From Octopus bimaculoides (taxonomy: Eukaryota), in NCBI RefSeq assembly GCF_001194135.2, contig NC_068990.1, forward strand, positions 14,913,977-14,956,017: a stretch of DNA of 42,041 bases, in the 5' to 3' direction. This document shows positions 579-42,041 of the stretch, one piece after another. How positions within the stretch are numbered: position 1 is the first letter of the stretch; the number at the start of each line of letters is the position of its first letter. The notes under the pieces are model-generated. The model worked only from the letters and a program-made list of their open reading frames with translations. It searched no databases and was not told the DNA's origin. Both the position numbers and the translations under genes were made by a program.

Positions 579-746
579 ATCCAGGGATTGTGTGGAAACT
601 TCAATCATGATATCAATGATGAATTTTATGAATCTTCTAGTCTGCTTATGGATAAGTATAACTTTGTCTCAGCATATAAAGAGGAACTCTGCCCTGAACC
701 ACAAAGAAAAGACATTGAAACGCATCCATGTTCTGTATTTTCATTT
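579..746 (+). CDS. Exon: C-terminal part of VWD and start of C8 ([16 protein letters not shown]...THPCSVFSF)
   Basis: tttag|ATC acceptor, TTT|gtaagt donor, phase 0-0, GLCGNFN..D.F motif. Confidence 0.93.
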
Positions 747-2854
747 GTAAGTTTCATAAAATCCCTTGTAACTCTATGAAACAAGAAAGAAAAAAATAAT
801 TTTCATATTTTGTTTCATCTGTTGGACACAGAAGTTGTTCTATTATAAGAATTTTTTCTATACTAGAGGGACTTTGGTCCTGCTAGTATAAAAGATGATG
901 GCTACTTTAATGTGCTGGTTCTAGAATCTTTATTGGAAATAAAATATACTTACCTGAAGTTAAACAGCAACAACATTTCTCTTTATATATTCTCTAAACA
1001 ATAAAAAAAAATTTTTATCCTAAAACCACCCTGGTAACGCTTGTCTGTGAAGAGCCCTGCCTCATCAACCTTCTCCCCCACCCACATTTCCTCTCTCAAC
1101 ACCCAAAAAGCACTGGTGATAGTGCCATGCAAAAAACACTAGTGATGGTTTCATTTAAAAAACACTAGTAATGGTGTCATGTAAAAAGCACCCAGTACAC
1201 TCTGTAAAGTGGTTGGCATTAGGAAGGGCATCCAGCTTTTGAAACCAAGCCAAAAGATGATAGTATTAACAGGAAAATATGAGTTTCTTATCTTAAATAA
1301 TATCAAATAGTAATGGTTTTTCCCATTAAATAATACTATTACGAAATATTAATTTTTTACATTAGATAACAATGGTTTCATACATTGGCAGAGTGGTATA
1401 ATTTATTCCATATTCATCAGTGTTACTCTTGGGAAAAATAGGAATGAATTAATGTCTAATTTCCCCTTTCTCTAAACTGCATCAAAGTAGCAAAGAGAGT
1501 AAGAGAAGGAAATGTACTGAGCTACTGGAGCTGTATGCCAAATCAATGGGTAGCATACCGTTGAGGGTGCAGAGGATTTTCAGGCCAGTCCTCTGCAGAG
1601 TATACAACATGCTTGGCATTACAGGAACTTGTGGGTGGAAGAAGGACATCATGTTGGCTGTGGGATCATGAGAGGTTTCCTCAAGGTGGCTGTGGATCAA
1701 GAGGTTCAAACCCTGGAAGGGGCAGTGCTACCAGAGGTACAGTGCTAACTGGACACAAGCTAGGGTTTGATCAACCCTGGCTGAATCACCTGGGTGTGGG
1801 TATCTGATAATGAAAAATTCAAAACACCTAACGACCCCAGGAAACAATGCTGATGATAGGTCCAGGTGCATCATAGGATGATGCTTAAAAAAAGGCTTCA
1901 AATCTATAAAGTTCCAATTATTCTAAATAATTATTATTTCTAACTATTTTCCAATTATAAATTGAATAATAAGAGAAATTATTTTCTTTCAGAATATAAA
2001 ACAAAAAGATGAAAATTGTGCCATATTTGAAAATAGTGAGTTGTTAGGTGCCTGCTATGATGTGGTTCCTTATGAACATTTCTTCCATCTTTGTCAAAAA
2101 GAGATGTGTACCAGTACTCACAACAACAATGCTGCAATGTGTATCGTACTTGAAACCTACCTGAGAGAGTGTGCACTCCATGGGACACATATTAAATTAT
2201 CAAAGGCCATTGCTGAAAAATGTTGTAAGTACACTGTCTTTAATATGGCATAATTATTTTAATGTTAAGGATTTTGTTTTGCTTTATGCATAATTTTGAT
2301 TTTAGTTATCTGCCTGTTTTAAAAGATCAAATTTAAGAAACTATTTATACACATATACATATATGTATAAACATTCATACATGCAGGCATACATACATAC
2401 ATACATACATAGGTTCATACCCGTGATTGTTGGGGCATTGGGATATGTAACGAACTGCCTCAACAAAAACCTGGAAAAATTAGGGTTCTCAAAACCTGAA
2501 AGTAAAAGGCTGATTAGAAGACTACAGATTCGAGCCATCAATGGAACTGTAAAGATATGTAAAACTTTCCAAAAATTTAGCACGTAAATACATATGCATG
2601 CATCTAGACATGAAAATATATACATAAAAACGCATCCATAAAGCAAACATACAAATCTGCACATACACTAACACCAAATACTGCACACACACACATATGC
2701 ACAAATACCTAGATGATGTTGATAAAAGTTCCAATGAAGGAGCCTTGAATCTATGTTAGAGTCCGACTCTTTCTCTATGGACAAGAAATACAGAAATGAA
2801 ACTGATTGATAACATACATACATACATATATACATACATACATACATACATACA

Positions 2855-3508: not shown

Positions 3509-6500
3509 TGCACATGCACACATGCACACACACACACATGCACATGTACACACGCACACACACACACACATACATACACACACAAGTGGATAAACGAAAG
3601 TGGTACTTAACATATTTGGTAGGAGTTACATATATTATTTAATAACAGTTTGACTCACTTCCATGCAGAGTTTTTTGGGGCTTATTGGACAAACCCATCT
3701 CCAGATATCTCTGATGGGATGAATTCATGCTATGAGCCCACAAAAAAATCATATGGACTGGTGTCAAACTATTATTAAATTCATGAGGTATAGGTTCAAC
3801 ACTTGCCCAATGTTATGTGCAGTGCAATCAGACCTAGAACTATGTAGTTGTGAAGTGAACTTCTTCTCCTGAATATGTGATTATTTATAGCAATAAGTTT
3901 TAGGAATTTAAACAGAAAAAAGGATCATAAACATTTATGCACCCTACTTCTTAGTACAGAGATTTTAGTTTGTCTTTGATGTTAGGATTCTTTATTTCTC
4001 CTTTTATTTTAGAATTATTCTAAAATCTTCTCATTTATTCCAGCTTTTCAATGTCCACATGAGAAAAATAAACAATATACTCTATGTTCATCTTGCAAAG
4101 CAACATGCCATACATTTGAGTCCAAGTCAGATTTATGTGAAGAAGATTGCATCCCAGGTTGTGTATGTACATCAGGCACTTATCTAAACAGTGATGGTAA
4201 ATGTGTACCACTGGAAAGTTGTGACTGTGTTGATGTAACTACTAGTAAAAAGTACCCTGCTGGCTCTGAGTTCTTTAATTCATGTGGAAAATGGTAAGTG
4301 ATAATATTTATTGGTTTTAGGAAAATATTTCTTATGTTGATTAAAACATAGGTATTATAAACTTTTCAATCTCCACAATGTCAAGGTCAGTTACTCTTGT
4401 TTAAATGACATTACTACTAGCATTGCATGCTACATGATGCAAATGCACTCCTACACATCCTCCAATACATACCCCAACTTGTGACTGCCGAAACTCTACC
4501 AACTGCCCACTAACAGGATCCTGCTTATTGAGGGCTGTGGTCTATAAAGTCACCCTATCACCATCCAATGGCATTACAAGACACTGGACACTGCATGGGC
4601 ATAAGAGCCAATGCCTTCAAAAGAAGGTATACGCAGCATATGTGCTCCTTCGGGTGCAGGGATAGGGAAAACTCCACCACCTTGTCCTGTTCTATTGGAT
4701 CAATTCCCTCAACATCAAATGAAATATCATTGACAGAGCCCTTCCATACTCATCTGGAACTTGCAATTTCTGACTTTGCCTCTATGAGAGGCTGCAGTGT
4801 CCATCAACCTGCAGTGTCCATCAACAGGAAGAGTGGACCATCTTATTGTTACTACCAGAGGTTCACTATGTTTATGTATTTCACGCCACTAGCAGCTGAC
4901 AATCCAGATACACCACTCAAGGCCTGGTTCCTCCATACTCAAGGACATTGTACTTAACCCTTGCCAGCATATAGACTATGGCCCCATTCATACTGACAAT
5001 CCAACCTAGCACCACCAGATCTGGTTACTCTTATGGAAAAGCTGTTGCTGCTTTAGTATTACTTCTCCATTAACCTGCGACAATACCCCATTTTGCCATG
5101 TGTAGCAGCAAATGCAACAAACTGATGTTACTGAATATATCATACCAGAGCACCCAGACATAGCAGTGACAACTACCTACCTACATCTTGTCTGTCCATA
5201 TAGGCTTTATAACAAAGAAAATAAATGATGTTGCTTTTATACCAATAATACCACATGACCTGAGATAACCAACAGAGGCCATCTTGAATTTGTCTCCTAT
5301 CTTGGTACTCTATCTCCAGATACCTGAGGAGTTAGGTTCGTTATACAAACCTATAGAATTTTAAGCTGTGTGGAGATGAGTCAAACTGTAATTAAATAAT
5401 ATATGTGTGCATTTATCCACATCACTGCTTGAAAACACGTGTTGGTTTGTTCACGTTACAAGAACTTAGTGGTTAGGCAAAAGTAATCAATAGAATAAAT
5501 ATCAGGTATAAAAGAAGTGCTAGGGTTTATTTGTTTGACTAAACCCTTCAAGACAGTGCCTTAGCATGGCTGCAGTCCGGTGAATAAAACAAGTAAAAGA
5601 GGATAAGAATTTCTAGAAACAGTTTCTAAGCTGCAATATTTATGTATTTTAAAATTCATGATAATTTGTCTTTCACATCTGACCAATAGTATATATTTGT
5701 TTTTAGAAGTTATTTGATTATGAAGACCTATCTTAAAATTTAATATCTTCTGATTTTTTTTCTTTATAAGCAAATGTGTCAATGGTACATTCAAATGTTC
5801 CAAAGAAAAATGCAAAGAAGAAGTTATTTGCCCAAAGAATCAAATATATTATGAAAATGTAACCTGCGTAAAAACTTGTCAAAAATTAACACATCAAGGG
5901 AAATGTACGACTTTACCGCATCAAGGTTGTGCTTGTAAAACTGGAGATGTTGTTGGACCTGATGTGAGTATTATAAATTATAAATTTCGCTTTATAAACT
6001 TTAATCGAAGTATTATATTTATTGGAAAACTCCAATAAACTCTGTCTGACCCATGTTAACATAGAAAAGTGGATGTTAAAATGATGATAATAAAGAAATT
6101 GGTGAGGTTATGAAATTGCCATATTGCAACCATTGTTTCTCTATAATAACAACTGTACCCCTTCTAATTTCATAATTGGTTCTTTTATAATTACTTTATT
6201 GATTTCTCACATCTGTACAAGGACACAAATTTTCACAAGATGTTTATTTCATAATTAATATTGCCATGTCGCCTAATATTAGAATTTGAATTTGCTTGTT
6301 TTATATTCCCAACATTTGTTAATTCCCCTTGTTTGGTAAAAACTCTCTTTACTCTTTTACTTGTTTCAGTCATTTGACTGTGGCCATGCTGGAGCACCAC
6401 CTTTAGTCGAGAAAATCGACTCCAGGACTTATTCTTTGTAAGCCTAATACTTATTCTATCGGTCTCTTTTGCCGAACCGCTAAGTTACAGGGACGTAAAC

Positions 6501-8238
6501 ACACCAGCATTGGTTGTCAAGCGATGTTTGGGGGACAAACATAGACACGCAAACAGATACACACACACACACACACACACATATATACATATATACGACA
6601 GGCTTCTTTCAGTTTCCGTCTACCAAATCCACTCACAAGGCTTTGGTCAGCCCAAGGCAATAGTAGAAGACACTTGCCCAAGGTGCCATGCAGTGGGACT
6701 GAACCTGGAACCATGTGGTTGGTAAGCAAGCTACTTACCACACAGCCACTCCTACGCCTTTATTTTATCCATTTATTTTTGATTTGCCATGTCAGTATAT
6801 GAAGAAGAGTGAAGGTGCATGGCTTAGTGGTTTTGGGGTTTGGGTTCATGATCACAAGGTCGTAAGTTCAATTCCTAGCCTTGAGCAAGACACTTTATTT
6901 CATGTTGCTCCAGTTCACTCAGCTAGCAAAAATGAGTAGTACCTGTATTTCAAAGGGCCAGCCTTATCTCATTCTGTGTCACACTAAATCTCTCTGAGAA
7001 CTATGTTAAGGGTACACATGTCTGTGGAGGGCTCAGCCACATGCATGTTAATTTCACAAGTCAGCTGTTTCGTTGATCAGCTCAACTGAAACCCTTTTCA
7101 TCGTAACCGATAGAGTGCCATATGAAGAAGAGTTTGCAAATGAGAAAATAATCTACTTCAACTGCCTTAGATGATGGATATAAACTGATTTAACTTTCTG
7201 CAGTATATTACTGGTACTTATTTTTAAATCAGTGTAGAAGAATGGAACTTTGGTACCATTATACATTTACAGCAATTATCCACAGTTTCAGTCATTCCAT
7301 GCAATTAGTGATAATGACTATAATAACTATGTTGTGTTTGTTTCTATTGTAGGGTTCTTGTGTGAAACCATCATTATGTCCTTGTCGCTATGACCAATAT
7401 TGGAAGCCATCAGGATCAAGTATAAAAATTGGCTGCAAAAAATTGTATGTTTTCAAAGAAATTCCCTTTTCTTTATATAAATCCTCTACATTATAAATAC
7501 ATGTATTTAGTGACATAAAGAATGCAGTTATATTAGAAATACTCTAATTTCAGCTGCAAATGCTCAGGATAAAGTGCATGTCAGGGACAAAATTAACTTG
7601 TGTGAGGCCCAACTTCACATACAGAATCTAGGAGGATATTTTTTGGGGGAAATGTGTATCTTTTGTATTCAATTATGGTAGTTATAGGATTTAATCCGTC
7701 TATCTATGTTTATTTGTAATTGTATTTTTATTTTTAGGAAACAAATTATAACATTTATGTAATATATAGTGGAACATTGGGTTATGAATTTATTTTGTTC
7801 CTGAAGGCCGTTCATCACCTGAAATGTCCTTAAACTAAAACCATTTCCCCCATAGAACATCCAAGGGAAGACATAATGAATTTGAACAGGGATATATGCA
7901 CTGAGTGAAAACTTGACTGCAACTAATGTTCGCCTGCTGATACTCTCAGTTTGTTGTCAACCATTGCTGCTGGCTTGTATGTTCATTACTTGAGGCACTG
8001 TTTGTCACCCAATATGTTCTATGTTCAATAAAATTCAGTTCTATATTTAAGAGATGAGGAATTATGTACATTATTTACATTATTTACATTTGACGGATAT
8101 TTGTCCTCATCTTGTTTGTTGTTAACACAACGTTTCAGCTGATATACCCTCCAGCCTCCATCAGGTGCCTTTGGGAAATTTTGAACCTGGGTTCTTATTC
8201 CTAAGTTTTTCATTTTTTCGATGTTATTATTATTATTA

Positions 8239-8391: not shown

Positions 8392-11300
8392 TAATAATAA
8401 TAATAACAATGCTCAATAAAATTGTTTGTAAACTGTTTTGTTCATGATAAGAGGAATTCACAAACCAACATACTACTGTATATATAAAACATATATGTCT
8501 ATATAACACGTATCTATCTATCCATCAATCTACCTGTCNNNNNNNNNNNNNNNNNNNNNNNNNNNNNNNNNNNNNNNNNNNNNNNNNNNNNNNNNNNNNN
8601 NNNNNNNNNNNNNNNNNNNNNNNNNNNNNNNNNNNNNNNNNNNNNNNNNNNNNNNNNNNNNNNNNNNNNNNNNNNNNNNNNNNNNNNNNNNNNNNNNNNN
8701 NNNNNNNNNNNNNNNNNNNNNNNNNNNNNNNNNNNNNNNNNNNNNNNNNNNNNNNNNNNNNNNNNNNNNNNNNNNNNNNNNNNNNNNNNNNNNNNNNNNN
8801 NNNNNNNNNNNNNNNNNNNNNNNNNNNNNNNNNNNNNNNNNNNNNNNNNNNNNNNNNNNNNNNNNNNNNNNNNNNNNNNNNNNNNNNNNNNNNNNNNNNN
8901 NNNNNNNNNNNNNNNNNNNNNNNNNNNNNNNNNNNNNNNNNNNNNNNNNNNNNNNNNNNNNNNNNNNNNNNNNNNNNNNNNNNNNNNNNNNNNNNNNNNN
9001 NNNNNNNNNNNNNNNNNNNNNNNNNNNNNNNNNNNNNNNNNNNNNNNNNNNNNNNNNNNNNNNNNNNNNNNNNNNNNNNNNNNNNNNNNNNNNNNNNNNN
9101 NNNNNNNNNNNNNNNNNNNNNNNNNNNNNNNNNNNNNNNNNNNNNNNNNNNNNNNNNNNNNNNNNNNNNNNNNNNNNNNNNNNNNTTTGACTGATTAAGC
9201 GATGTAAAGCGTATTTAATCTCCATACCTTCGTTTTATTTGCTTTAACCCTAACCCTAACCCTAACCTTAGGGTTAGGGTTAATTGTTTCAGAATCGTTT
9301 GTTTATGTAGTCGGCACTTAATGTATATCGGCTGAATGGACGTCAGTGATTGGTTGAAATTACAGAAATACGACAACTTTAACATGGAATAATTTATGGA
9401 TTTCTTTTTTTTTTAAGAAGACTAAGAGAAAAAGATGTTTTATATGACACATTCTACCAGTGATCCAAGTTTCAAAGTGTTTCGTTAATGAAAAATGTGG
9501 CCCCCGTTTTAAAAAAGATCCCTCTTTTTTTCTAATTGATAAGTTACAGGCTAAGTCATGCTTAAAATTTCTAAAACGAATTAAATAATACTATATATAA
9601 TTACCACTAACTAGAAATTGTAAAAACTTCGTAATTGATAGAAAAAAGTTAAATCTGGGAATTCTATGCAAATTCTTCCTTGTATTCCTTAATTTTAAAT
9701 CCCAGTTTCTAATCCCACCTTATGTTATGAGGGAATGGTTATTTCCCTTATATTAGTGGCTACGACCAAAGGGCACCACAAGTATTTAGGTTGATATTTT
9801 TAGGATTTGCATCAAAGATATATTATTTACATTTATGTTATTTTTACAGATACTGTAGTGGTGGAATATGGCAAAGTAAGAAAATTAAAGACTGTCCAGG
9901 TATATCCTCATTACTGCCTTTACATCATTGCATCAGTTTTCTCATTATCAAAATCATCACTTATTTGTCTGTTCATTTAGATTGAATCAGAGCTCACTTC
10001 TATCTTTTTGTCAGTATACTAGTTTTCTTATAAACAAGTTCAATCCAAAAGTACAATGCACCTAAGTTAAAGACACATCAAAGATTTAAGTGTGTTTTCA
10101 GTAACCTAGAAATTGATGTAAATCTCCACCTTTATTAACTTTTTCCCTAGTATAGCTGCAGTTTAATGACTGAAACAAGTAAACCAAAAAAAAAAAAAAA
10201 AAACAGGTATTAAATTTTGATTTGTGAGTTCAAAGCTTAATTGTGGTTGAAGGAAGGTTTATTTTTGAAATATGTTCAGAGAAAGAAAACGTGTGCCTAT
10301 TATTTTACAAAACTCTCAGACTAATGATGTAGAAATAGCTAGAATATATGTAGACTTATATTATCAGGAAAAAAATATGTGGAAATCAATACTTTTTGTT
10401 TACAGTTCAGAGAGTGGAGGCGCAATGGCCCAGTGGTTAGGGCAGCAGACTCGCGGTCGTAGGATCGCGGTTTCGATCCCTAGACCGGGCGTTGTGAGTG
10501 CTTATTGAGTGAAAACACCTAAAGCTCCACGAGGCTCCAGCAGGGGACGGTGGTGAACCCTGCTGTACTCTTTCACCACAACTTTCTCTCACTCTTACTT
10601 CCTGTTTCTGTTGTGCCTGTAATTCAAAGGGTCAGCCTTGTCACACTGTCACGCTGAATATCCCCAAGAACTACATTAAGGGTACATGTGCCTGTGGAGT
10701 GCTCAGCCACTTGCACATTAATTTCATGAGCAGGCTGTTCTGTTGATCAGATCAACTGGGACCCTCGACGTCGTAAGCGACAGAGTGCCAACAAACAGTT
10801 CAAATAAAAATATTGCACTTTGTATTTTCCTACATTTTAAACTCTAAAACTTCAAGTCTATGAAAATAGTTATTGATATGTTGATAAACTTTTACTATTA
10901 TCATTCTCTTTTCTTTTTTTTTTCCAGCTGTTTGTTGGGCATCCGGAGATCCTCACTACAAAACATTTGATGGCAAACATTTTTCTTTCATGGGAGACTG
11001 TTCTTATACATTGGCTCAGGCAAAAGATAAAAGCTTTTCTATTACTGTCCGAAATGTAAAATGTGGTTCATTTGGAGTCACTTGTACAAAGGAGGTTTAT
11101 ATTGCAATCCTTGGAAATTTCATTCACTTAGTTATGGGTAAAACTCCTACAATTAATGACGTTCAGATACCAGCATCAGGTTATAAAGGAACTGGACTTG
11201 AAATCAGATATGCTGGTCTATTCTTAATTGTATTCTCAAATCATGGACTAACTGTTTTATGGGACTTTGGTATGTTTTATATTTGTTTCTTATTATATAA

Positions 11301-14300
11301 TACGAATTTAGATATGGTTTGTAATTTTTTCATACCAAAATACAGAACGTAAACTAGATATAAAATATAGAAAATTTCATATTAAAATAGGCTCAAGCAT
11401 GGCTGTATGAGTAAGAAGCTTACTTTGCAACCATGTAATTTCAGGTTCAATCTCACTGCATAGCACCTAGGGTAACTTTCTTCTAGTTCCTATATACTTT
11501 GCTTAGATGGAATAAATACTCTCTGCCCTTCATTTGGTTCATGAACATCCAGCACTGGGATCAGGTCTGGATAAGTATTTGTTACATGGTAACGGTTGAA
11601 AATTAAAATTTTAAAAGAACTCCCAAAATTTGTAAACTCACAAGTTTTTCATTTAAACTGAATTTAAAGTAATACCATATTGATAGGGTACCAATAAATG
11701 CTTTATTATTATTGCTTTCTATAGTTTTGAGCCACAGGCTCAATAAGCCCTCCTCAGGAGCCAGTGCAAAAGTCTGCATGGAGTACAGCTTCTAGGCTAG
11801 TTATAAATATGTCCTTGTCATCTTCTTTGAGGTTACTTAGAAGAGGCTCCTGAAACTTCACCTTGTCTAATTATACTGGTAGAGAAGATCTAATTACTTT
11901 CATGGTACTAATCAATATAACATGCATTTTAAATCCAATCATTCACTTAAATAGATCAATTAAACACTATCACTCTTTTGTTTTACAATGTTTGCAATTC
12001 ACTATCAAAATTATTTGTTACAAAGAATTTCCACATATGCAAATGTACACTTGCAAGCACATGCACGTGTGTATATGTGTGTCTCTGTGTGTGTGCATAT
12101 ATATATATATATATATATANNNNNNNNNNNNNNNNNNNNNNNNNNNNNNNNNNNNNNNNNNNNNNNNNNNNNNNNNNNNNNNNNNNNNNNNNNNNNNNNN
12201 NNNNNNNNNNNNNNNNNNNNNNNNNNNNNNNNNNNNNNNNNNNNNNNNNNNNNNNNNNNNNNNNNNNNNNNNNNNNNNNNNNNNNNNNNNNNNNNNNNNN
12301 NNNNNNNNNNNNNNNNNNNNNNNNNNNNNNNNNNNNNNNNNNNNNNNNNNNNNNNNNNNNNNNNNNNNNNNNNNNNNNNNNNNNNNNNNNNNNNNNNNNN
12401 NNNNNNNNNNNNNNNNNNNNNNNNNNNNNNNNNNNNNNNNNNNNNNNNNNNNNNNNNNNNNNNNNNNNNNNNNNNNNNNNNNNNNNNNNNNNNNNNNNNN
12501 NNNNNNNNNNNNNNNNNNNNNNNNNNNNNNNNNNNNNNNNNNNNNNNNNNNNNNNNNNNNNNNNNNNNNNNNNNNNNNNNNNNNNNNNNNNNNNNNNNNN
12601 NNNNNNNNNNNNNNNNNNNNNNNNNNNNNNNNNNNNNNNNNNNNNNNNNNNNNNNNNNNNNNNNNNNNNNNNNNNNNNNNNNNNNNNNNNNNNNNNNNNN
12701 NNNNNNNNNNNNNNNNNNNNNNNNNNNNNNNNNNNNNNNNNNNNNNNNNNNNNNNNNNNNNNNNNNNNNNNNNNNNNNNNNNNNNNNNNNNNNNNNNNNN
12801 NNNNNNNNNNNNNNNNNNNNNNNNNNNNNNNNNNNNNNNNNNNNNNNNNNNNNNNNNNNNNNNNNNNNNNNNNNNNNNNNNNNNNNNNNNNNNNNNNNNN
12901 NNNNNNNNNNNNNNNNNNNNNNNNNNNNNNNNNGGAAATTTAGATAGTGTCACGTGACAACTTGCTGGGGCAGCCTGCTGGAGCCTAGCAGCAGGTATAA
13001 AAAGGGGAATTTGACAAGGCAGTCAGTCGGACGCTGACACTCGTTGATGTTGCATCAAAGAGGCCAGGGAATAGAAGAAAGAAGACATGCACCCAACACC
13101 AGAGCTGAAGACACCTCCGAAAGGGGGGGCCCCGCCACGTCAAAACGGTAGAGGAGTAGGGGCCGAAACCGGACGTGGTTCCTTCTGATGATGTCTTGAG
13201 CTAACTGGATCCTATAAAGAAGCTGTTGTAGCAGACCACAAAACATAGTTGAAATTCCTCCATCTCTTAAAGTTTCTAAACTCTCAAGCAGCCGTTGACT
13301 TTTTCCACTCAGGGTTTTTCAGCCTAATATTCAACTCGCTGTCATTTATAGCTTTATCTATTTTGAATTCCACCATTACAAATTATTTATCTTCATATCT
13401 TTTGATGTTTCTAAATCCTTACAGCATGAATGACAAGCAATCTTTGCTGGTAAGAACAAAGCTCCTAAAATGGTTGGAGAAAATTTAAAGGTTTGCTTTG
13501 ATATCATGGTAGAATGTCTGTAATGTTTACAGAAGATGTGGGTTCGAGTCCCACAAACAGCATTTGACTTTTCCCACCCAAAGATTTTTTAAACCCAATA
13601 TTCTACACATTATTATTTATAGTTTTATCTACTTAGAGTTCTACTGTTAAAATGATTTATTTAATGTGTTTTGTAAGACATAATGTTTTAAAGAGCTTAC
13701 AAAATAATGTGAAGTACTCTTTTTGTTGACTTAATTCTGAAAGTATAAAAGGGTCTCTCTTTTAGCTCTGATCAAGTGTAGAGGGGTAAGATATTTAACT
13801 ATAAATGCATATCAGTTAATACCCACTGCAATAGTTATGCACTCAAGGTGCATGAGACCAGTACCTTACCTAAAAGATTATTTCAAGCATTGTGCTTTTG
13901 GCCAAGACATCCAATTACACATGTATCAACTAATCTAGATCTTCCTGGGTGGGAAAAGTCAAATGCTGTTTGTGTGACTTGAACCTACATCTTCTGTAAA
14001 CATTACAGACATTCTACCATAATATCAAAGCAACCCTTCAAATTTTCTCCAACCATTTTAGGAGCTTTGTTCTTATCAGCAAGAATTGCTTGTCATTTAT
14101 GTTGTAAGGAAGATATAAATTAGTTGAGAGAGTAACTGTCAATCTAATGGGAGATTTATGCTTCATTTAATGAACCCTAAAGATTGCAGAAACATTTTTC
14201 TAATATCACAATTCATTACTGGAAACTACTAATTTTGCTGATGACAAAAGAATGAAACACATTACTAGGTAACCATAAGAGATCATGATAGGTGCAAAGG

Positions 14301-16051
14301 AAAACCACAAAGGATATTTGAAGTTTTTTTTTGTACAGCAAGTAATGTCTTTATTATAACCACTTACAGATTCTTCCTCCTGGGTATCTTACTACCATTT
14401 ATGTCTTGAATTTAAATATCTAAAATAAAATTTTCAGATTCTGACATTGTTAAGAAAAATGCTTGTATATTTTTTTAATTTATGACATGTTATATTATTT
14501 TACATATTGATCAACTCTGCATTGTTTTATCATCCTTAGCAAAATGTAGAACATTTAATTTGGGCTGAAGAGAAATGTAAAATCATATTGTCAGGATTAA
14601 TATTTGAACGATGTAGAAATGTCCTTCCTTCAACAATTGTTAAAAAATACTATGATGACTGTCTAAATGATGCATGTGGGTGAGTTTAATTTAAATGTTA
14701 CTTTAACAAATCCCTTTCAATTACATTAATTTTTTTCTAAAAGTAAAAACAAACAATTTAAAGAAGTTAATCACCTCACCACCCTCTCTTCTAAAATGAA
14801 AGTAGCCTTGTAGCCCCTTATCAGCAAGAAACCCATCCTGGTCTAAGTCCACTTCCAATACTTTTAATCTCTCATAAAGCCACCTCACTTGGAGTTTGTA
14901 GTCTTGCAAGGTGCATGGTGACTTCATTAGTGCTGCTGGCACATTAAAAGAACCTAGTACATTTCTAAAGTGGTAAGTGGTAGGAAGGGCACCCAACCAT
15001 AGGAACAATATCAATATAGAGAGTAGAACACTATCCTTGGGCCTATCAGATCCTGTCAAGCCATCCAAGTCTAACTCATGCTACCATAGAACAAGGATAT
15101 ATATATGCTCTCCCTGTCTTGGGTTTTAAACACTAAAACTGTTGATGGGAGTAGTAGGAGCACTGATATGACATCCAGCATATCTGGTGGAGCCCATCTT
15201 TCTCAAGATCTAAAATGCAGCCAATTTCTTCAAAGAGAGAAAGATAGATGAAGAGAGGAAATTATTCTAATGCCAGACTGATACTATACATATATAAAAT
15301 AGTTTCTTTAATGCTTTTTTTTAATATGTTATTATTTAAAATTTTATAAAAATGTTTCTTTGTTATTGAGAACCTCACTAGACATTAATTGGATATAGCT
15401 GAAGAATAAAGAAAATTTTCCCACTTTGAAACTTATAATTAAAAAATTCAAAATTGATTTTTAAATTATCTAAAAATTAATTCCAAATCAAATATCAAAT
15501 TATTTACTTTATATAATACATTTACTACATAAAATGTTATTTTAACCATCTTAGCTAAATAATTAATTAATTTTAATGAATTAGTAGTTAATCCCTTAAC
15601 ATTCAGATTACTCTGGCAAATGTAATGCTTATTTATTATATTGTTTTGAATTAATTATGCATTATCTCATAACTGTGAGAAATCAATGATGTGGTTGTCT
15701 ATATTTAGAATGACATTGCAGTGTAGGTGTGAGAGGCTGGATCTGATCAGTTTAAATGTAAAACTGGAAGAATATTTTGGTGTGATATGGTCTGTTGAAA
15801 TATTAAAAGGTTAAAACGTGTGATTTCTTTCCAGTTGTGACAACGGCAGAGGTGGTGATTGTCTATGCACTGCTATTGCAAACTTTGCCACAGAATGTAC
15901 TTTTCTTGGAGTTCCTACAAGATGGCGGACTCAATCACTTTGTCGTAAGTATTGTGTGAAAAATTATTGAAATGTAAAAACAACTTAAATTTTTAATTCC
16001 TTTTTGATGTTAAAAAATAATTTTACTGGAATATGCACACACAAACACATC

Positions 16052-16091
<40 letters not shown>

Positions 16092-16095
16092 ACTA

Positions 16096-16126
<31 letters not shown>

Positions 16127-17839
16127 ATCTATCTATCTATCTATCTATCCATACATACATACATACATACATACATAGGTATGTATGTCTATAATTATAT
16201 GTGTGTGTGTATGTAGGTATGTATATGTATGTATATATATGTAAATATATTTATGTATATATATATATTCATGTACATATATGAATGTGTGTGCACATGC
16301 ATGTGTGCATGTGGGGGGGGGCTTGTCTTTGTCCCTACACTGCTTGACAACTGATCTTGGTTTGTTTACATTCAAGTAATTTAGCAAAAGAGACTGTGGA
16401 AAAAGAACCAGACTTAAAAACTAAGTACTGGGGTTGATTTGTTCAATGAAACTCTTGAAGGTAGTGCCCCAAAATGGCTACACTCCAATGACTGGAACGG
16501 GTAGAAAAAATAAATAAATAAACAAATAAATATTGTTATGTAAGTGTATCTTCTGTTTGTTTCATTTCATTTTTCAGTGTCTGTCTGTCTCTGTCTGTCT
16601 CTGTCTGTCTACCTGATTCTGTCTCTCTCTATCTCTTTCTCTCTCCCCCCCTCTCTCTCTCTCAATTATCAGTTACCCATATGATCTTAAAGAGTATAAT
16701 TCTATATTTCATTATTTTGAAATGATTATTTTATAATCAATATAATATGTAATATAATTTTCATTCTTTTGTAAATCATCTTCTGCAGCAATCCAGTGTG
16801 ATATAGGTTCAGTATATTTTGAATGCGGAAGTGCAAAACCAAAAATGTGCAATGATTTATCAGAAAAAATAAATAAAGAAATTGGTTCAGAATCAGCTCC
16901 CTGTGTTGAAGGTTGTTTTTGTCCACATGGTTATGTAATGGAAGGTAAAAGTTCGTTATGGATTTCATATTTCTAAGAAATAAGATCAACTCTTTCAAAT
17001 TTCATTAAGTAACTAACTGACAAAAATCTTTTAAGTTAGAATGTATAAATTCATATAAACTGTGGCTCCTATACAAATACCAGTTTGTTTAAGCATAGTA
17101 CATTGTCTGTCATGTGGGTTAACAAGGGACTTGTTCAGATCAAGGGACTTTGTTCAGATCATATCTGCTGTTTGAAAAATATATTGTAGTTTCCACTCAA
17201 TGTAAGTACAGCCAGCAATATGCCTGTGAGTTGTTCTGAGAAACATGGGGTGGAAGCACAAAGGATATATCTCCCCTTGGTTCTTGAAGATGGTTCAGAA
17301 GGGAACAAATGTTTGTGATTGGGAATGAATAAATTATAATGACAGTTGCTAGTGTAATGATGATTGCTTCTGATTAGACCTTATAGAGGAAGGTGCCTGA
17401 TGACTCTACCCCAATGACCTTCTCAGGAATACTGGACAAAGAAGATGAATGGAAGGATGCTTTAAGAATATAATTTTACTTACAACTTGAATGTACTTAC
17501 AATTTTGCTTATAATTTTAGAAAATGAATGTATACCTGAATCAGAATGTCCTTGCTATCTTGGAATTGCCAAATATCCATCTGGAACTAAAGTTTCATTA
17601 GATCTGTGTACAGTTTGGTAAGCATACTTGAAAATAATGACATTCACTATATCTTATGATAATTATTGGTTAGATTAAAACTTATTTATTTGAAATCCAT
17701 CACAATAAGCTCTAGGCATTGAAAATTGATTTTATCTTTTGTGATGATTATAGTTACTAGTAACAGCTATCGATTAATAATTTAAAATGGAAACTCTTGA
17801 AAGCAGAGAATTTATAATATAAAAGTAGCTAATATATTT

Positions 17840-17875
<36 letters not shown>

Positions 17876-20800
17876 ATCAAGTAAATGTAAAAATAAGCAA
17901 GTTGGGCAGGTCAAAATACAAAATGTATTCTTTTCTACTCTAGATACAAGGCCTAAAATTTTGTGGGAGGGAGCCAGTCGATTAGATCGATCCCAGTATG
18001 CAACTGGTACTTAATTTATCGACAGATGAAAGGCAAAATCGACCTCGGTGAAATTTGAACTCAGAATGTATAGACACAAAATACCACAAAGTATTTCACC
18101 CAACATGCTAACGTTTCTGCCAGCACACCACCTTAAAAAATACAAAGTATATTAAATACATAGAATACAAAAAATGTACACATAATAGAAATGATATCAA
18201 GAATTAAAGAGGTTGAAGAAAAGTATTACAAATCCAACAGCTGTTTCTGTGGGCTCGGTGGTCCAATATAATGTTTGTAGATAGATTCCATCATTGGATG
18301 AGATGAGCCTCCATCTTCAGAGAAGAGGTTTTGACATTTCAGGTGTTGACAAGAAGTTTAAAGATTCCAAAACTGGGATCATAGAAAATGATTCCCCATT
18401 CAAATAGTCAGCGGCTCCAAATACTGTTAATCTTCTTGATCTCAGATATACTTAGTTCTGGACATCTAGAATATCATTAATATCAATTCTTTCAATGCAA
18501 AAAGGCAAAAGTAGACATAAGAAGATTATAACTTTGTTTCTGTTTCTTTGAATCAAATGTCATTTTCGGAAACATTTTTTCATGATCAAAATTGCTGAAG
18601 CATGAAATAAATTACCTGCATCAGTTGTTAACTGTCAGGACACTGCATTTTTCAAAGCTTCCATGCTTCCCAAAATTCACCAACAGTACATCTAATGCCC
18701 CACTTCCATCTTTTTTTTTAAAGCAACTAAATCACTGTTCACTCCCTGTGTATTATTTTATATACTGTTCATGCACTTTCCACTACTTTATTTAGTGAGC
18801 TGTAATGCACCTGAGCACTGTATACAATAAATTCATTATTATATTATGTATAATATATTATATCATATATAATATTGGGTTGTCTGGAAAGTTTGTGTTG
18901 ATTTATAGTAGCTTACCTTTCAACTTATTTGCCATGAAACCACCTCAATTCTGGGAAGAGGGTATTTTCAAGTTAAAGGAAAAATGGAGACACATTGTGC
19001 AACAAAATGATTCATATTTGGTTGATTAAGAATGTAATGGCAAGTATTTATTGACCTTTTTCTTTCCTTTAAAAATCGGCACGAACTTTCCGGACAATCC
19101 AATATATAACTCTAGTGTGACCTTTTAACTTTTTCATTTGTATTTTGGATAAGCAACAATGATATTGAATTAAACTCTCAATAAAAGAACCCCCAAAAAT
19201 CGCTTGTAACTATATTGAATCTAGTATATTTTGAATGCCATTTCCTTTATATATTACATATATTTCAGTACTTGTTATGGAGGAATCTTGGAATGTAGAA
19301 ATAACACCTGCACTTGCCCTGAAGGACAGTTCCATTGCAGAAATAATGAATGTATTGACTCTAAAAAGATTTGTGATAAACATAATGACTGTCAAGATGG
19401 ATCTGATGAGTCATTGGATATCTGCAATGAAGGTTAGTCATCAGTTTGGATTTAAGAGTGAAAGCATCTTATTGTTCTTACATATTTGGGTGCAGGCATG
19501 GTTGTGTGGTTAAGAAACTTGCTTCCCAACCAAGTAACTTTGAGTTCAGTCTCACTACATGGCAGTTTGGGCAAGTATTTTCTTCTATAGCCCCAAGATG
19601 ACCAAAGCTTTGTAAATGGATTTGGTAAATGGAAACTGAAAGAAACTTGTCATGTGTATATTCATACATACATAATACACACACACACACATACAGACAT
19701 GCATGTGTGTGTGTGTGTGTATTTATATGTATCCTTGTCTGGATATCATTTGATACTTGTAAATGAACATCATCAGACAAGCAAGGTTGTTCATTTCCAA
19801 CATTCTACGAAAAACATGCTTGGCCAAAGGGAAATATTACCTTGCTTGGAAGCAAGTGAAAGTTGGCAACAGGAAAGGTATCCTGTAGTAGAAAATTTGC
19901 TTCAACAAATTCCCTCTGACCCATGTAGGCATGGAAAAGTTGCTGACCAGCGGTTTTGAGGGAAGGGAGGCAATATGATTACATTAATCCCAGAACTTGA
20001 CTGGTACTTTATTTTATTGACCCTGAAAGAATGAAAGGCTAAGCTGACCATGGCAAGATTTGAACTCAGAATGTAGAGATCTAGAAGAAATGTCATTTAA
20101 GCTTTTTGGCTAATGTGCTAATGATTTTGCCAGCTTGCTGCCTTATAACGATAATTAGATTGCTTTAAAATGTCTGTGTGTACAAAAGTGCCTTGATATT
20201 GATTTCAGAATATTCATTGCTTGTTTGAAGTTTAAAAGGAGATTTTAAGTAATAAAACCTGAAATTTGAAAGAGGAAAACAAATGAAAGTTATGATGCTC
20301 ATATATTTCCTGAACACAATAACAATACAAAGAAAACTAGCTAAATTAAATTGCAGTTGGCTTTATTTCATATAAACTATAATTCATTCTTTTGCTCATG
20401 GTGTTATCTTCTGTCTCTCTGGCTCTATAAAAGAAATTATTAATAATAACCCATCAAATTCAACAGATATAGGATCAGATTAAAATAACTATCTGTATGT
20501 CATCCTCAATGCAAATACATCCCAAAAAGCCAAATTAACTACAGTATTCATTCAGAGACACTATCTGTTATGGATGCATGCCTTTTCATTTTGTGTTTGC
20601 ATCAAGTATGATACTCAGGTGACTATTTTAATCTAATACTGCTTCTGTTGCATTAAAAGAGTTTTATTCAGCCAGCCAGCTACTTGCAACATCAGTGATC
20701 TTTCAATCACTGTTTTCCTATATTAGTGGCAACAGATTTTACCTTAGCAAGTGGTTGCCAGTGAGTGCATACTACAGAAAAAACCCAACAAGGCAGAAAT

Positions 20801-27353: not shown

Positions 27354-30300
27354 TGTGTGTGTGTGTGTGTGTGTTTGTGTGTGTGCATACATAAATACAT
27401 ATATGCATATATACACACACACATAAATCTATATTTATTCATACATATATCATATTTGCCTTTATATGTAGCATCTAGTATCATCTTAGATTCAATCCAT
27501 GTAAATAAATGTATTCTTTTAAAATCTAAATTAATTAATAATGTTACATTTACTTTCATTTCTTTAATAGTAACCACACCTGAGGTAACCACCATATTAA
27601 CCCCAACTACATTTCTACCAACCAGTTAGTATACTTATTTATTCACTTATTGATTAAATTTTTCACATTAGATATTAAATTTATGATTTTACTATATCTA
27701 ATGACTCTCATTTTGATTTGATATTGCAAAACTCAAAGTAAAAATCTAATTTACTATTTCATATTTTGATTATACTGTTATATACAACTGCATCTCTATT
27801 AATGGCACCCTAACCTGTAACAGAGACAGGAATGATACAATGAGTGAGCCTCTACACAGTCGTTCATCCAACTAGAAATAGCAGCCAACTTCCATTAAAT
27901 CACTCTGCTTTCATGAACTCTTTGTTTGTCCTGTGTATCACATATTACCCTGGCATCTATGTGTCGTATGATGCAAATATCCAATTTTTTGGATATCTGT
28001 ATAAATCACTTAATAAATCACTGTATACCAGAATTCAGTGCAGAATTAAAATTACCATATAATATCTAAGCTGTTATATTGGTTGATATTTGCCCTGGAA
28101 CTCACTATTAGGTTTGTATGTGTTTGAGTTAGACTGAGTGACATTACAAAACAAAAACCAACAAGTAGTAGATATGGTTTTAAAAACTTTCTATTTGTTT
28201 TAAATGGAATCTATAAAGAATATTTTATAATTTTAACTAACGTTTCTGATAAGGCATTTAATTTCTTTTGTAGAATCATGGTGCATATTCAATGATGGCT
28301 TGGCAGAGCATACTTTAGTAAGAAACACAGATATCAATTTGTCAAGCAATGATGAAAACAAAAATGTTATTCGACCAGGAGGAAAAGGTTGGAAACCAGC
28401 AAAAGAAGATAAGAAACCGTTTGTTAGCTTTTTTGTTGGTGATTCTTTGAGGTATGGTGCATCTATACATCTAGGCAAGGCTAAAGATATTAAAAGTTTT
28501 GATGTTATTCTAAGTGGAGGTGAAAATAATAAGAAATATATGGTGAGTTTACAAAACAATGTTTGACTACTTTTTTTAATGCAGTAAAATGAACAGTTAC
28601 ATCATGGTAGAGTTATTCAAGCTGTCAAATAACACACAGAACTGTTCAAGTCACTTTTAACTTATTCCATAAAGTGTCAAAATGTCTCCCACAAATACAA
28701 CCTGGTCCCTGATACAGTTTCACAACTGTTCAAAAGCTTGGTCCCTGTAGGTCTCAGTTTTTGTCTATTTTTATTTCATATAAGACTTAAGGATATATGG
28801 GTTTGCTGTGTTTATGTAAATTTTGACCGCATAACCTTGGGCAATAATCTTTAGTAACTTTCAGTTTCTATTATTTTTATTGTATATATAGCATTGTGAC
28901 CATTCCACTTATTCCTTCATTTCTTCTTTCTTTTCTTGAATGTTAATTTTGAATGTAATTCTTCCATGGTTGAGATTTAAATATTGCACTGTCAAATTTA
29001 TTATCATTCTGTCCTGTAATAGTCTTTACTATCTTATTATCCCTAACTACCTTGTTCCAACTTTATCATAGTGTGGAAGGCATATTCCATTTTCATCAGT
29101 TTTTAGATGAAGAAAGGTATGTAAGCTGAAGTGAAGATAACAAATTTGGCTTTTTAACCAACCTCTCCTTTTCTGAGGATCAAACGCTGGAGTTGGCACA
29201 TTACCTTACCAGCACCTGCAATTCCAGCATTCGATTCAGCCTCCTGCTTCCCATCAGTTATAAAAACAGCTCTGAAATACTTGTCTCAGATCAAAATTAT
29301 TCTAGGTGAATATAACAAACCCATATTTCAAAGTTCAATACCGTGAGGTGGGGCGGAGCGAGAAGAAATCTAAAAACTATCAGGACTGATCTTGAACAAA
29401 CTTTTAAAAAGTTGTAATGGAACTATGCTAGTCACCAGGTCACGGTTATGCAATGAAAATATTTGACATGTCATGAAATAAGTTAAAGGTGAATTTAACA
29501 GATCTGTGTGCACTATTAACCCTTTAGCATTTAAACTGGCCATATCTGGCCCAAATATTCTACCTGTTTTATGTTCAAACTGATTAGATCTGGCCTCCTA
29601 CACCTACCCTACAATGCCATTCTAAAAAAATAAACAATCATATCAAAATCTCAAGGCCACAAGATAATGTGTGATAAATTCAAAGCAATATGAATGAATA
29701 AGAATTACATTTGATAGGGTAATCTGAATGTAAAGGGTTAAATGGCAAGGAGTACTCTTCCACAATGTGATTTGCTTCAGTTTTAATACATGATCTCTGA
29801 TAAAGTCACTTGCTAGACAAGTACAATTCCATAAAATAAATGTTTTAAAACCATGTCGTCTAAATTATATTTTGAAATAATTGTTTGTCAGAAGAAATTA
29901 TATTCTTGATTAAATATTGAGTATATTTACTTCTAAAATATAAATAAAGAAATTAATTGAAATCCTGGATTATGATTATTGCTAACTGTATGTAATATCG
30001 TTGCTAAGATTTGCTGCTAGTAAATTTGGAAAATATGGTTTTGTCATTTGATTATTTACTATGAAATTACTATTTTAAAATAATTGAAGAAACTATGTCA
30101 GCTAGGATAAATTTTGTTACATTAATTTTGTTAAGATGTGTGACCAAATGGTTTGGGTGTTGCACCAGTGACCATAAGACCATGGTTTCAATTATTTTCA
30201 TACTGGGCAATGCATTGTGTTCTTGAGCAAAACACTTCATTTTACATTGTTCTGGTTTGCTCAGCTTTGAATGAGTTCCAACAATTACTCAGAAGTTAAC

Positions 30301-33052
30301 CTTGTGTCAGACTGGCATCTCATTCAAGAAAAAAATTGTCATAATCTTAGTCAATTATACACCATGAGAAGTTGACTAAGCCCTAATTTTATGAGTCCTA
30401 GGGCTCAGGACTGACCTAAATCTAATTCAATAAATTCAATATCATTCATTATCCAGGGCTTCATCACCCGTGAAGGAGAAACTCCTTCCTGGACTCCTTC
30501 CACCACTGTCTGTCTCTGGTCAGTCATGATTATAAGTCCCAGGTAGCAGGTGAGATTATCTCACCATCTTGTCTTCAGTTGTCAGCATCTTGATCTTCTC
30601 CATGTCTTGATGACCATTCCATCACCTACCTTGATTGCTCATCTGTTGACTTTCAGTCATGTGATGTGGCCATGTGATGGTTTAATAATTCAATATGTTT
30701 TATTATTTCTTTTGTTGAAGTCTGATAACCAAACAAGTATGTAATAATGGATACTTCTCAGGTTATACATAAATATAATCGTTCTTTCCTATTTGAATAT
30801 CCAGGCAAACTTAAAAGGAAGTGTAGTTAAAATTCCATTTGGCACCACATCAACAACTGTAAAGATCTCTTTCAAAGGGGTTCCAGGTGATTGTGACATG
30901 GCTGTGACAGTATCTATAAAGGGGTGCTTTGAATCACTAAGTAAGTATTTAAATGTATCTTTTACTTGTTTCGGTCATTAGACTGTGGCCATGCTACAGC
31001 ACTGCTTTGAAGAATTTCAGTCGAATGAATTGACCCCAGTACTTTGAAGTATAGTACTTATTTTATCAGTCTGTTTTGTTGAACTGCTAAGTGACGGAGA
31101 TATAAACACAACAATACCAGTTGTCAAGCAATGGTGGGGGACAAACATAGACACAGAGACACACACACACATATGTCAGGCTTCTTTTGGTTTCTATCTA
31201 CCAAATCCACTCACAAGGCTTTAGTAGGCCCAAGGCTATGGTAGAAGACACTTGCCCAAGGTGCTACACAGTAGTACTGAACCCAGAACCATGTGGTTGG
31301 GAAGCAACCTTCTTACCTCACAGCCACACCTGTACCTGTATATTGCATCTCATCAAATTAATTTGGTCTTCTATATCTAATTCCATAACTAGTATATTTT
31401 GTAGAAGGCGCATGGCTCAGTGGTTAGGGCATCGAGCTTACGATCATGAAGTTGTGAGTTCGAATCCCAGACCGGGCTGAGTGTTGTGTTCTTGAGCAAG
31501 ACACTTTATTTCACATTGCTCCAGTTCACTCAGCAGTAGAAATGAGTTGCAATGTCACAGGTGCCAAGCTGTATCGGCCCCTTTGCCTTTCCCTTGGATA
31601 ACACTGGTGGCGTGGAGAGGGGAGGCCAGTATACATGAGTGACTGCTGGTCTTCCATAAAAAAACAACCTTGCCCGGACTTGTGCTTGGGAGGGTAACTT
31701 TCTAGGTGCAATCCCATGGTCAGTCATGACCGAATGGGGTCTCAGCATACTTTGTAAATTAACAGAATACTATTTTCCTTGTTGGGTTAGCCTTGCGGTT
31801 CTTAAATGGTGCCCCATGAAAACGATTAGAATTGTATTACTGGTCAAGACATTCTTGTAAAACATTTTTGGAAAACAAATAGTCTTGTGGTTTAATGAAC
31901 TGACATGAAACAGCATGTGAATAATGCCGATGTAGTTCACATCATTCCATTTTTTACCTTTCCAGTTTTAGCTTCTACTCTTGTGCCAGCTAAATTAGCT
32001 CAGGTAACAACACAGGCACAAAAGATGTTTAAAAGTTGCTACTTTAATTTTTGACACTATACTTTAAAAATATTTCTACCATTTTTTCCAGTCTTTCTAG
32101 CAAGGAACTAAATTTCTTCTGTAGAATGTTGGTGAATTTAATGGGCCAATCATGCAATTAATAAAATTTTAATTTGAAAAATATTGCATAAATAATGTTG
32201 GTTTCAAGAAGAGGATCATTAATATTAGCTGCTTTACTTAGATGCTTGACGATAAGATAGATTCTGGTTGCTTTTTTTTCATTAAATTATAAAAGCACAG
32301 TGGTAACACATTGAATGCATGTTAGAATCTTATATAAAAATCTTACCAAAAATATATTTTTTCTTACTGTTTCTATGTTGAATATATGAAATTTCATTAA
32401 CTGTTTTGTAAGCTTTAAAATGTCTGATAATATACATAACAAATGTTATTTTGTTGGTATTATATAAAGATCGTAGTAAATGTAATTCGTTTTTATCATT
32501 TTGATTTTAGCTACAACACCACTTCCAACATCAACAGCACAACCAACAACAGCAACAGGTATGATGATTAAAAGACACTTTTTTCAATTTCTTTAATATG
32601 AAAAATCTAAAGAATCTTTCTATGATTTTATGTAAACTTTTATCTAATAATGAATTGAATTTCTTCTGTAGAGTCTTGGTGTGTATTCAATGATGGTTTG
32701 GCAGATCATACTTTAATAAGGAACTGGGACATTAATTTGTCAAGCAATGATGAAAACAAAAATGTTATTCGACCAGGAGGAAAAGGTTGGAAACCAGCAA
32801 AAGAAGATAAGAAACCATTTGTTAGCATTTTTGTTGGTGACTCTTTGAGGTATGGTGCATCTATACGTCTGGGCAAGGCTAAAGATATTAAAAGTTTTGA
32901 TGTTATTCTAAGTGGAGGTGAAAACAATAAGAAATTCAAGGTAAGTTTACTGAAATGATGACCGCCTTTCTTCTCAAAATAATAAAATGTAACTGGTTAT
33001 ATTTTTTCAGACATTTAATTTTAAAGCATATATACATATATATGTATATATA

Positions 33053-33083
<31 letters not shown>

Positions 33084-36000: not shown

Positions 36001-36688
36001 TTTCATTCTATTAGGGAATAATCAATGTAAATTTATAAAGTGATAATTTCTTAAATTTCATTGTCTTTCATTTCCATTTCAGCCACACCTGTTCCAACAA
36101 CAACACTCCAACCCACAACACAAACAGGTAAACTATTTCTCTTTCATAGAAATATTAGTGTTTTTAGATATTGTAATAATACTCATGGTAATAATGGTCA
36201 TTTTGTTGATTTCATTTTATTTATTGATATTGTTTTCTAGAATCCTGGTGTGTATTCAATGATGGTTTGGAAGATCCCTCATTAATAAGGGCGTGGGACA
36301 TTAAATTATCAAGCAATGATAAAAGTCCAGATGCTATTCGCCCGGGTAGAAATGGTTGGAGACCAGATGAAGGTGATATGAAGCGCACAGTAACAATGTT
36401 TGTTGGTGATGCTTTAAGATATGGTGCATCTATTCATCTATTACGAGCTGTGGGTGTTGCAAAGTTCGATGTTATTCTCAGTGGAGGAGAGAATAATAGA
36501 CTTAAGGTGAGTTTCAGTGAGGTAAATTTACTATAACAATATTATCACATTAAACACTTTATTGAAATAGTTCCATAAGTTTTAGCATTATTATCCAATC
36601 CTACAGAAACGCTGCTCTCAGGGCAGTTTTCTGTTAGAATATGTCATGTTTGCTTGTAGGAAACAGCTGTGATGTGTATTTCTGCCAA

Positions 36689-36741
<53 letters not shown>

Positions 36742-36875: not shown

Positions 36876-36950
<75 letters not shown>

Positions 36951-41983: not shown

Positions 41984-42041
41984 GTGAGTTTCAATGAGTG
42001 AATACACACCTCATTAAAACTGTTTATAACATAAATATTAG

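Follow-up and report, generated by a model that had tools for sequence, protein, structure and literature searches.

A D3 assembly apparently lacking both interchain cysteines in an octopus SCO-spondin-like gene

In the polymers of von Willebrand factor (VWF) and the mucins, it is the D3 assemblies that make the covalent head-to-head connection. A 42,041-nucleotide stretch of the Octopus bimaculoides genome (RefSeq assembly GCF_001194135.2, contig NC_068990.1, positions 14,913,977 to 14,956,017, forward strand; hereafter the window, with all coordinates counted from its first base and exon borders placed by hand) raises the question of what becomes of this connection in a protein whose D3 has dispensed with the cysteines that make it. 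A first-pass annotation, prepared from the DNA letters alone, had proposed that the D3-like assembly encoded at 15835-16944 lacks both cysteines used for N-terminal disulfide dimerisation in VWF and the gel-forming mucins, that the protein cannot multimerise head-to-head in the classical way, and that any gel must be cross-linked otherwise, for example through the odd cysteine of downstream repeats. Here we examine each of these steps by alignment, by comparison with an octopus paralogue and by a broad survey of D3 assemblies.

The chemistry at stake is well documented. In VWF tubules visualized by cryo-electron microscopy, C1097-C1097' and C1142-C1142' are the interchain bonds, and C1097 is first bonded to C1091, from which it is freed upon attack by C1099 (PMC9507011). 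In MUC2, C1088 and C1130 are interchain, and C1082 pairs with C1090 within the chain (PMC6739602). What the first-pass annotation gave as established about Cys1142, the Cys1097/1099 exchange and the MUC2 equivalents agrees with both reports. An HMMER comparison of VWF D2 with D3 opens two gaps, one of two residues that coincides with Asp1096-Cys1097 and one of ten residues that spans the Cys1142 loop; this pair and this loop are what sets D3 apart from D1 and D2.

Splicing the first C8 exon of the octopus assembly (C8a, ending GAT GCA TGT GG before the donor gtgagt) to the second (C8b, opening after the acceptor cag with T TGT GAC AAC GGC AGA GGT GGT GAT TGT CTA TGC) gives the same C8 reading as had been proposed, with a glycine codon, GGT, at 15854-15856, and the VWF string quoted earlier for comparison, DTCSCESIGDCACFC, is found exactly at residues 1087-1101 of PDB chain 7pmv_A. 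Both HMMER and MAFFT align this stretch gap-free to the D3 of MUC2 (CSCDTGGDCECFC), MUC5AC, VWF and the SCO-spondins of fish, frog and lemming, and both place the glycine in the column of the first cysteine of the CxCxC motif (VWF Cys1097, MUC2 Cys1088). The multiple alignment that had been suggested as a check, run with the D3 of VWF, MUC2, MUC5AC and SCO-spondin, shows glycine in this column and no insertion in TIL. At the DNA level, C8b aligns without a gap to the corresponding exon of the octopus paralogue P0003, and each differing motif codon differs by one base: the key codon is TGT in the paralogue and GGT in the window, the neighbouring aspartate codon GAT is replaced by GGT (Gly), and a further adjacent codon changes from GGA to AGA. 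Because this alignment needs only single-base changes per codon, the gap-free reading is preferred; an alternative gapped alignment, in which GGDC is kept and "EC" deleted, was rejected as less parsimonious. The earlier identification of the missing residue as the Cys1097 equivalent is thus upheld, while its proviso that another gapping would remove a different one of the three cysteines falls away, since the DNA alignment favours the gap-free reading. Taken as a whole, the comparison favours loss of the Cys1097/Cys1088 equivalent itself.

The counterpart of Cys1142 is missing as well. The TIL exon, joined to the last base of C8b, encodes a first loop of canonical length with a single cysteine, and the 10-residue VWF insertion that bears Cys1142 is absent from the window in the alignment, as the first-pass annotation had said. 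A local HMMER alignment pairs the cysteine of the window's YFEC with MUC2 Cys1130 by spacing; this residue is shown to be the canonical structural TIL cysteine by its Y-x-x-C-G context, by a TIL cysteine count equal to that of the paralogue (seven) and by the same pattern in D1, D2 and SCO-spondin. All SCO-spondin relatives examined, vertebrate SCO-spondin included, have a plain third TIL (TIL-3) without the VWF Cys1142 / MUC2 Cys1130 insertion. That no Cys1142 equivalent is present is thus a trait of the family, and only the loss in C8 is a specific event. The window D3 accordingly combines a C8 loop of D3-type length, without its cysteine, with a TIL loop of the D1/D2 type. A separate change affects the same domain: both octopus paralogues (16830-16920 in the window, and P0003) lack one TIL disulfide pair of vertebrate SCO-spondin, CGxxCxxTC...xxC having given way to CGSAKPKMC...GSESAPC, as though two cysteines had been lost in concert.

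All this presupposes that the assembly is a D3 by position. It is preceded by a D2 and by a VWD-less TIL'-E' pair, and the public gene model P0001, to whose UniParc entry the window exons are 100% identical, adds an upstream C8-TIL-E and a whole D2 VWD, so that the order reads D1-D2-TIL'-E'-VWD-C8-TIL-E. Since a D2 and the VWD-less pair precede it and P0001 supplies one D assembly further upstream, we assign the assembly to the D3 position. Its module composition, VWD-C8-TIL-E, is present in the window, with the second VWD exon hidden by an assembly gap. Upstream sequence had been named as the place where equivalence to D3 might fail; both the upstream exons and P0001 agree with the D3 position, and the view that the assembly is not the D3 equivalent, being contradicted by these exons, was rejected.

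The paralogue's D3 holds 31 cysteines; such an odd total would follow from one of them being set aside for an interchain bond. Relative to it, C8 in the window is one cysteine short, and the counts in VWD exon 1, TIL and E are the same; all other C8, TIL, E and LDLa cysteines are kept. The second exon of VWD3 (GLCG type) was not found in 11270-14539. In the paralogue this exon encodes about 69 residues with GLCGNF and three cysteines and lies about 1.1 kb after VWD exon 1; in the window it most likely sits within the run of N listed in Table 1. If it carries the usual three cysteines, the window D3 would have 30. The CxC...CxC that remains in C8 is the closed pattern of D1 and D2, in which all cysteines are paired within the module and the second cysteine of the first pair bonds the first cysteine of the second (as in C1091-C1099 and C1082-C1090).

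To place this arrangement among other D3 assemblies, the paralogue P0003 was searched against 1.84 billion cluster representatives and every C8/TIL junction was scored with a small profile in the best 150 proteins by total score, in the window and in the proteins that the first search had found, 700 junctions in all. We counted as a positional D3 any CxC-type C8 that follows the preceding one at a distance of 425-560 residues, and five fragments or partial models (the window, P0003, P0005, P0007 and P0009) were admitted directly as D3. Built on spacing and regular-expression classes, the survey is heuristic, and the direction of its result is clear nonetheless: CxCxC is kept in 90 of the 95 positional D3 assemblies, which leaves the window in a 5% minority, while among the other CxC-type assemblies 170 of 178 have four cysteines and 6 of 178 have five (CxCxC). 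The motif is thus a strong, almost diagnostic signature of the D3 position. Within the 95, it is combined with a VWF/mucin-type insertion cysteine in 47, with a plain TIL in 18 (those looked up by name are all SCO-spondin-type), with an extra cysteine in the first TIL loop in 17 (sea urchin, Saccoglossus and the annelid Owenia among the named examples) and with an unclassifiable TIL in 8. The extra-cysteine group forms a third class of D3, in which the loop cysteine occurs without a long insertion (CDGCREYDPC, for instance; P0050, P0079, P0085, P0073 and others), and the second interchain cysteine may in these proteins be placed in the loop instead.

Only four motif cysteines are found in 5 of the 95. 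Besides the window these are P0047, a Branchiostoma SCO-spondin-like protein in which the first cysteine is threonine, the TIL is plain and LDLa follows, the same combined state as in the window; P0130, a firefly SCO-spondin-like protein that has lost the first cysteine and has a loop cysteine in TIL; P0146, which lacks the middle cysteine; and P0057, a scorpion hemocytin lacking a different one. P0086, a close relative of P0047 with serine at the first position, lies just outside the spacing filter and is not among the 95. The state of the window is therefore not unique; with precedents in amphioxus, it is modest lineage-specific variation, and complete loss of both cysteines arose at least twice, in octopus and in amphioxus.

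Sequence similarity also bears on the family to which the gene belongs. Its best homologues are named SCO-spondin or SCO-spondin-like and come from O. bimaculoides itself (the paralogue), Argonauta, bivalves, echinoderms, amphioxus, fish, frog and lemming, and a rough neighbour-joining tree, calculated with no bootstrap, groups the window with the octopus paralogue and the Argonauta protein on a long branch. Invertebrate mucin-like proteins have been found to be closest to SCO-spondin (PMC4948705). Judged by these similarities, the gene is an octopus SCO-spondin-like ("invertebrate mucin-like") paralogue and not an orthologue of VWF or of a vertebrate mucin. The first-pass interpretation therefore holds in so far as it described a positional D3 that has lost both interchain cysteines; its VWF/mucin framing does not, as the nearest relatives are SCO-spondin-type, and the fitting frame should be a SCO-spondin-like paralogue with an additional C8 cysteine loss and not a mucin or VWF minus two.

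The likeness to the SCO-spondins extends over several features. The D3 of vertebrate SCO-spondin (SSPO) and of the SCO-spondin-like proteins of molluscs, echinoderms and amphioxus follows D1-D2-D' and is succeeded by LDLa, has GDPH in VWD3 and a plain TIL-3 without a Cys1142-type insertion, and reaches the highest identity to the window, 38-48% over C8-TIL-E-LDLa. These proteins keep CxCxC (CDxGGDCxCxC), whereas the window has glycine at the first cysteine; by the combination of CxCxC with plain TIL-3 that marks the SCO-spondins, the window has the plain TIL and a motif cut to CxC, while all 18 of the 18 plain-TIL five-cysteine D3 assemblies keep the full motif. The window also differs from them downstream, where an array of orphan domains stands in place of thrombospondin repeats or further LDLa modules. 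The octopus "SCO-spondin" paralogue P0003 (contig LGKD02089635.1, our L001) has an identical exon-intron structure over E'-VWD-C8-TIL-E-LDLa, the DACG/C split included, shows the same absence of a TIL disulfide pair relative to vertebrates and is among the window's nearest neighbours in the rough tree; Pfam detects LDLa in it. The two are nevertheless only 43-51% identical, and P0003 keeps CGCDLGGDCECVC. VWF, MUC2, MUC5AC and MUC5B share with the window the position of D3 after D1-D2-D', the VWD-C8-TIL-E composition and the length of the C8 loop, yet they possess both interchain cysteines (C1097/C1088 in C8, C1142/C1130 on the TIL insertion), of which the window has neither, and their VWD3 is without the GDPH that the window has. 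In the Branchiostoma SCO-spondin-like proteins (P0047, CAH1263783.1 / XP_035694119.1; P0086, C3Z3K1), the third D is followed by LDLa, the TIL is plain and C8 reads CGCDFGGD(T/S)KCVC, as in the window state; they differ from it as an independent loss in a distant lineage, to threonine or serine and not glycine, with another downstream architecture. Finally, the D1 and D2 C8 modules of VWF and MUC2 have the same four-cysteine CxC...CxC and plain first TIL loop, although their C8 loop is two residues shorter and they stand before D', so that the module in the window is a D3 that has reverted to the D1/D2 cysteine pattern. The GDPH itself (GGA GAT CCT CAC, 10945-10956) lies at the start of VWD3 and recurs in most SCO-spondin-type D3 assemblies of the survey; in FCGBP and the D4 of MUC2 this motif is known as the site of autocatalytic Asp-Pro cleavage.

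On the strength of these comparisons we consider it probable that the window encodes part of an octopus secreted SCO-spondin-like protein whose D3, minus both interchain cysteines, is paired within itself and makes no classical D3-D3 disulfides. The protein would be ordered D1-D2-D'(TIL'-E')-D3(VWD-C8-TIL-E)-LDLa, followed by many PTS-linked orphan domains with three cysteines each. Its plain TIL is shared with the SCO-spondin-type family, and the extra C8 cysteine has been lost through the change of TGT to GGT. The even set of cysteines left in D3 would all be paired internally; the exchange in which Cys1099 frees Cys1097 would not run, and interchain disulfides of the VWF/MUC2 type would not form. 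N-terminal association would then be non-covalent, or covalent links would come from a C-terminal knot lying beyond the view of the window or from the third cysteine of the repeats. It seems to us reasonable to conclude that a covalent D3-D3 dimer of the classical kind would not form; the earlier wording that the protein cannot multimerise head-to-head, and the talk of a gel, we would keep as inferences from sequence.

Several points weigh against this interpretation. Dimerisation of SCO-spondin-type D3 through the C8 cysteine has itself not been established, nor has the mode of polymerisation (PMC8487547). The N gap hides VWD3 exon 2, the cysteine count is incomplete to that extent, and an extra cysteine may lie there. 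The cysteine loss comes down to a single base of one draft assembly. When the spliced D'D3-LDLa sequence was used in a word-seeded search, no transcript or orthologue covering the C8b exon was found, and only P0001 (the same gene, ending before C8) and paralogues or distant relatives were returned; an exact look-up of P0001 gave no matching contig. The orphan array, moreover, is tied to the SCO-spondin-like head by strand, order and exon phase only. A rival proposal is that covalent head-to-head links persist through other cysteines, whether in the VWD3 exon within the gap, in a Cys1099 equivalent that swings out or in N-terminal modules beyond the window, for example an EMI domain. The absence of VWD3 exon 2 from the window leaves room for it, cysteine usage in the family is evidently plastic, as the third class of D3 illustrates, and EMI and other modules are presumed to take part in the polymerisation of SCO-spondin (PMC8487547). 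Against it, the cysteine counts of all sequenced D3 parts agree with the paralogue save for the one loss, and the C8 pattern that remains is the closed one of the 170 of 178 non-D3 assemblies. We therefore regard such links as unlikely, while granting them a modest chance.

The missing cysteine could also be an artefact or belong to a non-functional sequence, that is, a base-call error, a rare allele in the draft assembly or a decaying paralogue. The change from cysteine to glycine is indeed a single T-to-G difference, the surrounding assembly contains several N gaps and the search just described produced no confirming transcript or orthologue for the exon. However, the adjacent codons differ too (GAT to GGT, GGA to AGA), as though the whole interface motif had drifted, the remaining C8, TIL, E and LDLa cysteines are kept, the nine exons are open with canonical splice sites, and the independent losses of the same cysteine in amphioxus and firefly indicate that the state is viable; we hold an artefact or a decayed gene to be very improbable. 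Least credible of all, to the point of being almost negligible, is the proposal that no D3 is involved: in an ordinary assembly of the D1/D2/D4 type, a plain TIL and four cysteines in C8 would be the normal state. It can appeal to the agreement of the cysteine pattern with D1/D2 and to the fact that, within VWF, D2 matches the C8-TIL-E of the window best (74.9 bits, versus 29.0 bits for D3). It is opposed by the VWD-less TIL'-E' pair directly before the assembly, the full D assembly before that and the further one that P0001 adds upstream, by a C8 loop of D3 length, two residues longer than in D1/D2, and by the closest homologues, which are the third assemblies of SCO-spondin-like proteins and are then followed by LDLa.

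From about 27.5 kb onwards, the + strand carries an array of exon triplets, each made up of a 16-residue Thr/Pro-rich PTS linker, a 91-residue A exon and a 46-residue B exon (...C.M...KGCFES), as in the unit at 32511-32558, 32672-32940 and 33282-33417; a divergent A-like exon lies at about 23793-24101. The exon phases fit one another and the donor of the LDLa exon, and the array is apparently linked to the SCO-spondin-like head gene. Every 151-residue unit, with a domain of about 137 residues, has three invariant cysteines, which bears out the earlier mention of an odd cysteine in these repeats. The domain gave no Pfam match at E<=1 and no meaningful PDB sequence match, whether searched as a single sequence or as a profile; when the A exon was modelled by itself with AlphaFold, the pLDDT was only 70 and Foldseek gave no match to the model, and a guess at a discoidin-like fold was unsupported. 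The Pfam scan yielded no CysD-like match; the window contains only short PTS linkers of about 16 residues between the globular repeats and ends before the C-terminus, and full-length SCO-spondin-like proteins showed no similarity to the window beyond 19440, both gene ends lying outside it. A profile search with the repeat found homologous A/B arrays, 50-60% identical, on European Nucleotide Archive contigs of sample ERZ21867824, a "metagenome" assembly (ctg61611l, ctg119879l and ctg122297l; stretches L002-L006), one of which occupies at least 58-175 kb of a 255-kb contig; in this related genome the array runs to dozens of units and more than 100 kb. The stretches fetched from that sample lie within arrays, and the D3 of the homologue is expected further upstream. 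A more far-reaching scheme, to which we lend little credence, would have a cephalopod SCO-spondin-type head turned into a new secreted polymer in which D3 disulfide concatenation has been given up, the body has given way to a very long cephalopod-restricted orphan array and the third cysteine of its repeats cross-links the chains side to side.

Features of the gene are collected in Table 1. With a GC content of about 32%, the window is AT-rich eukaryotic DNA; it contains microsatellites as well as five runs of N, and in the D'-D3-LDLa stretch 9 of 9 exons on the + strand have AG/GT borders and share a single consistent open frame.

Table 1. Exons and other features of the octopus SCO-spondin-like gene (window coordinates)
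Feature	Position	Strand	Evidence
D2 VWD, last exon, with GLCGNFN	579..746	+	100% tblastn match to P0001 residues 282-337; AG/GT borders
D2 C8, two-cysteine type motif (C...C)	1993..2224	+	tblastn to P0001; borders
D2 TIL and start of E	4044..4293	+	open reading frame; tblastn matches to P0001 and P0002; true acceptor 4044
D2 E end, then TIL' (first half of D', without VWD)	5771..5963	+	tblastn; frame
E' part 1	7353..7444	+	tblastn; frame
E' part 2, 50-nucleotide mini-exon	9850..9899	+	pattern search; AG/GT; phase fits both neighbours; paralogue exon L001:7502-7552 matches
VWD of D3, exon 1	10928..11269	+	100% match to P0001; 52% identity to paralogue P0003
Run of N, probable site of missing VWD3 exon 2	12120..12933	.	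paralogue exon layout
C8 of D3, exon 1 (C8a)	14540..14679	+	tblastn; splice borders; frame
C8 of D3, exon 2 (C8b), GGT at 15854-15856 in place of first CxCxC cysteine	15835..15944	+	alignments; DNA comparison
Intron between C8 and TIL exons, mostly tetranucleotide microsatellites	15945..16788	+	
TIL of D3, canonical first loop, without insertion or extra cysteine	16789..16944	+	tblastn; alignment; survey
E of D3, exon 1	17521..17617	+	splice borders; frame
E of D3 end and one LDL-receptor class A module	19269..19432	+	tblastn to SCO-spondin LDLa modules; frame
Exon-triplet array (PTS mini-exon, 91-residue A exon, 46-residue B exon)	27500..42041	+	exon phase compatible with LDLa donor

The intron between C8b and TIL makes up most of the span 15835-16944 and contains (TATC)n, (TGTC)n, (CATA)n and CT-rich runs at 16050-16330 and 16570-16660. 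Interspersed repeats resembling short interspersed nuclear elements occur in introns of the gene at 6342-6767, 10414-10794 and 30958-31343 and are 84-94% identical to copies on O. bimaculoides contig L001 (GCA_001194135.2). The public model P0001 skips the E' mini-exon, splices the D2 TIL exon at an incorrect internal acceptor and ends at the assembly gap; the D3 C8-TIL of the window gene was found in no protein database entry.

The two D3 interchain cysteines were pinned down structurally only in 2019-2022, and the octopus gene does not overturn the current understanding of how they act. A natural D3 with the whole fold and neither cysteine would nevertheless provide a control that separates non-covalent docking from covalent locking. 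For the family at large, the second cysteine emerges as lineage-dependent, carried on an insertion in VWF and the mucins, represented by a loop cysteine in several invertebrate mucin-like proteins and absent from SCO-spondin. For the biology of the octopus, these observations point to a large glycoprotein, secreted and necessarily put together in another way than the textbook mucins.

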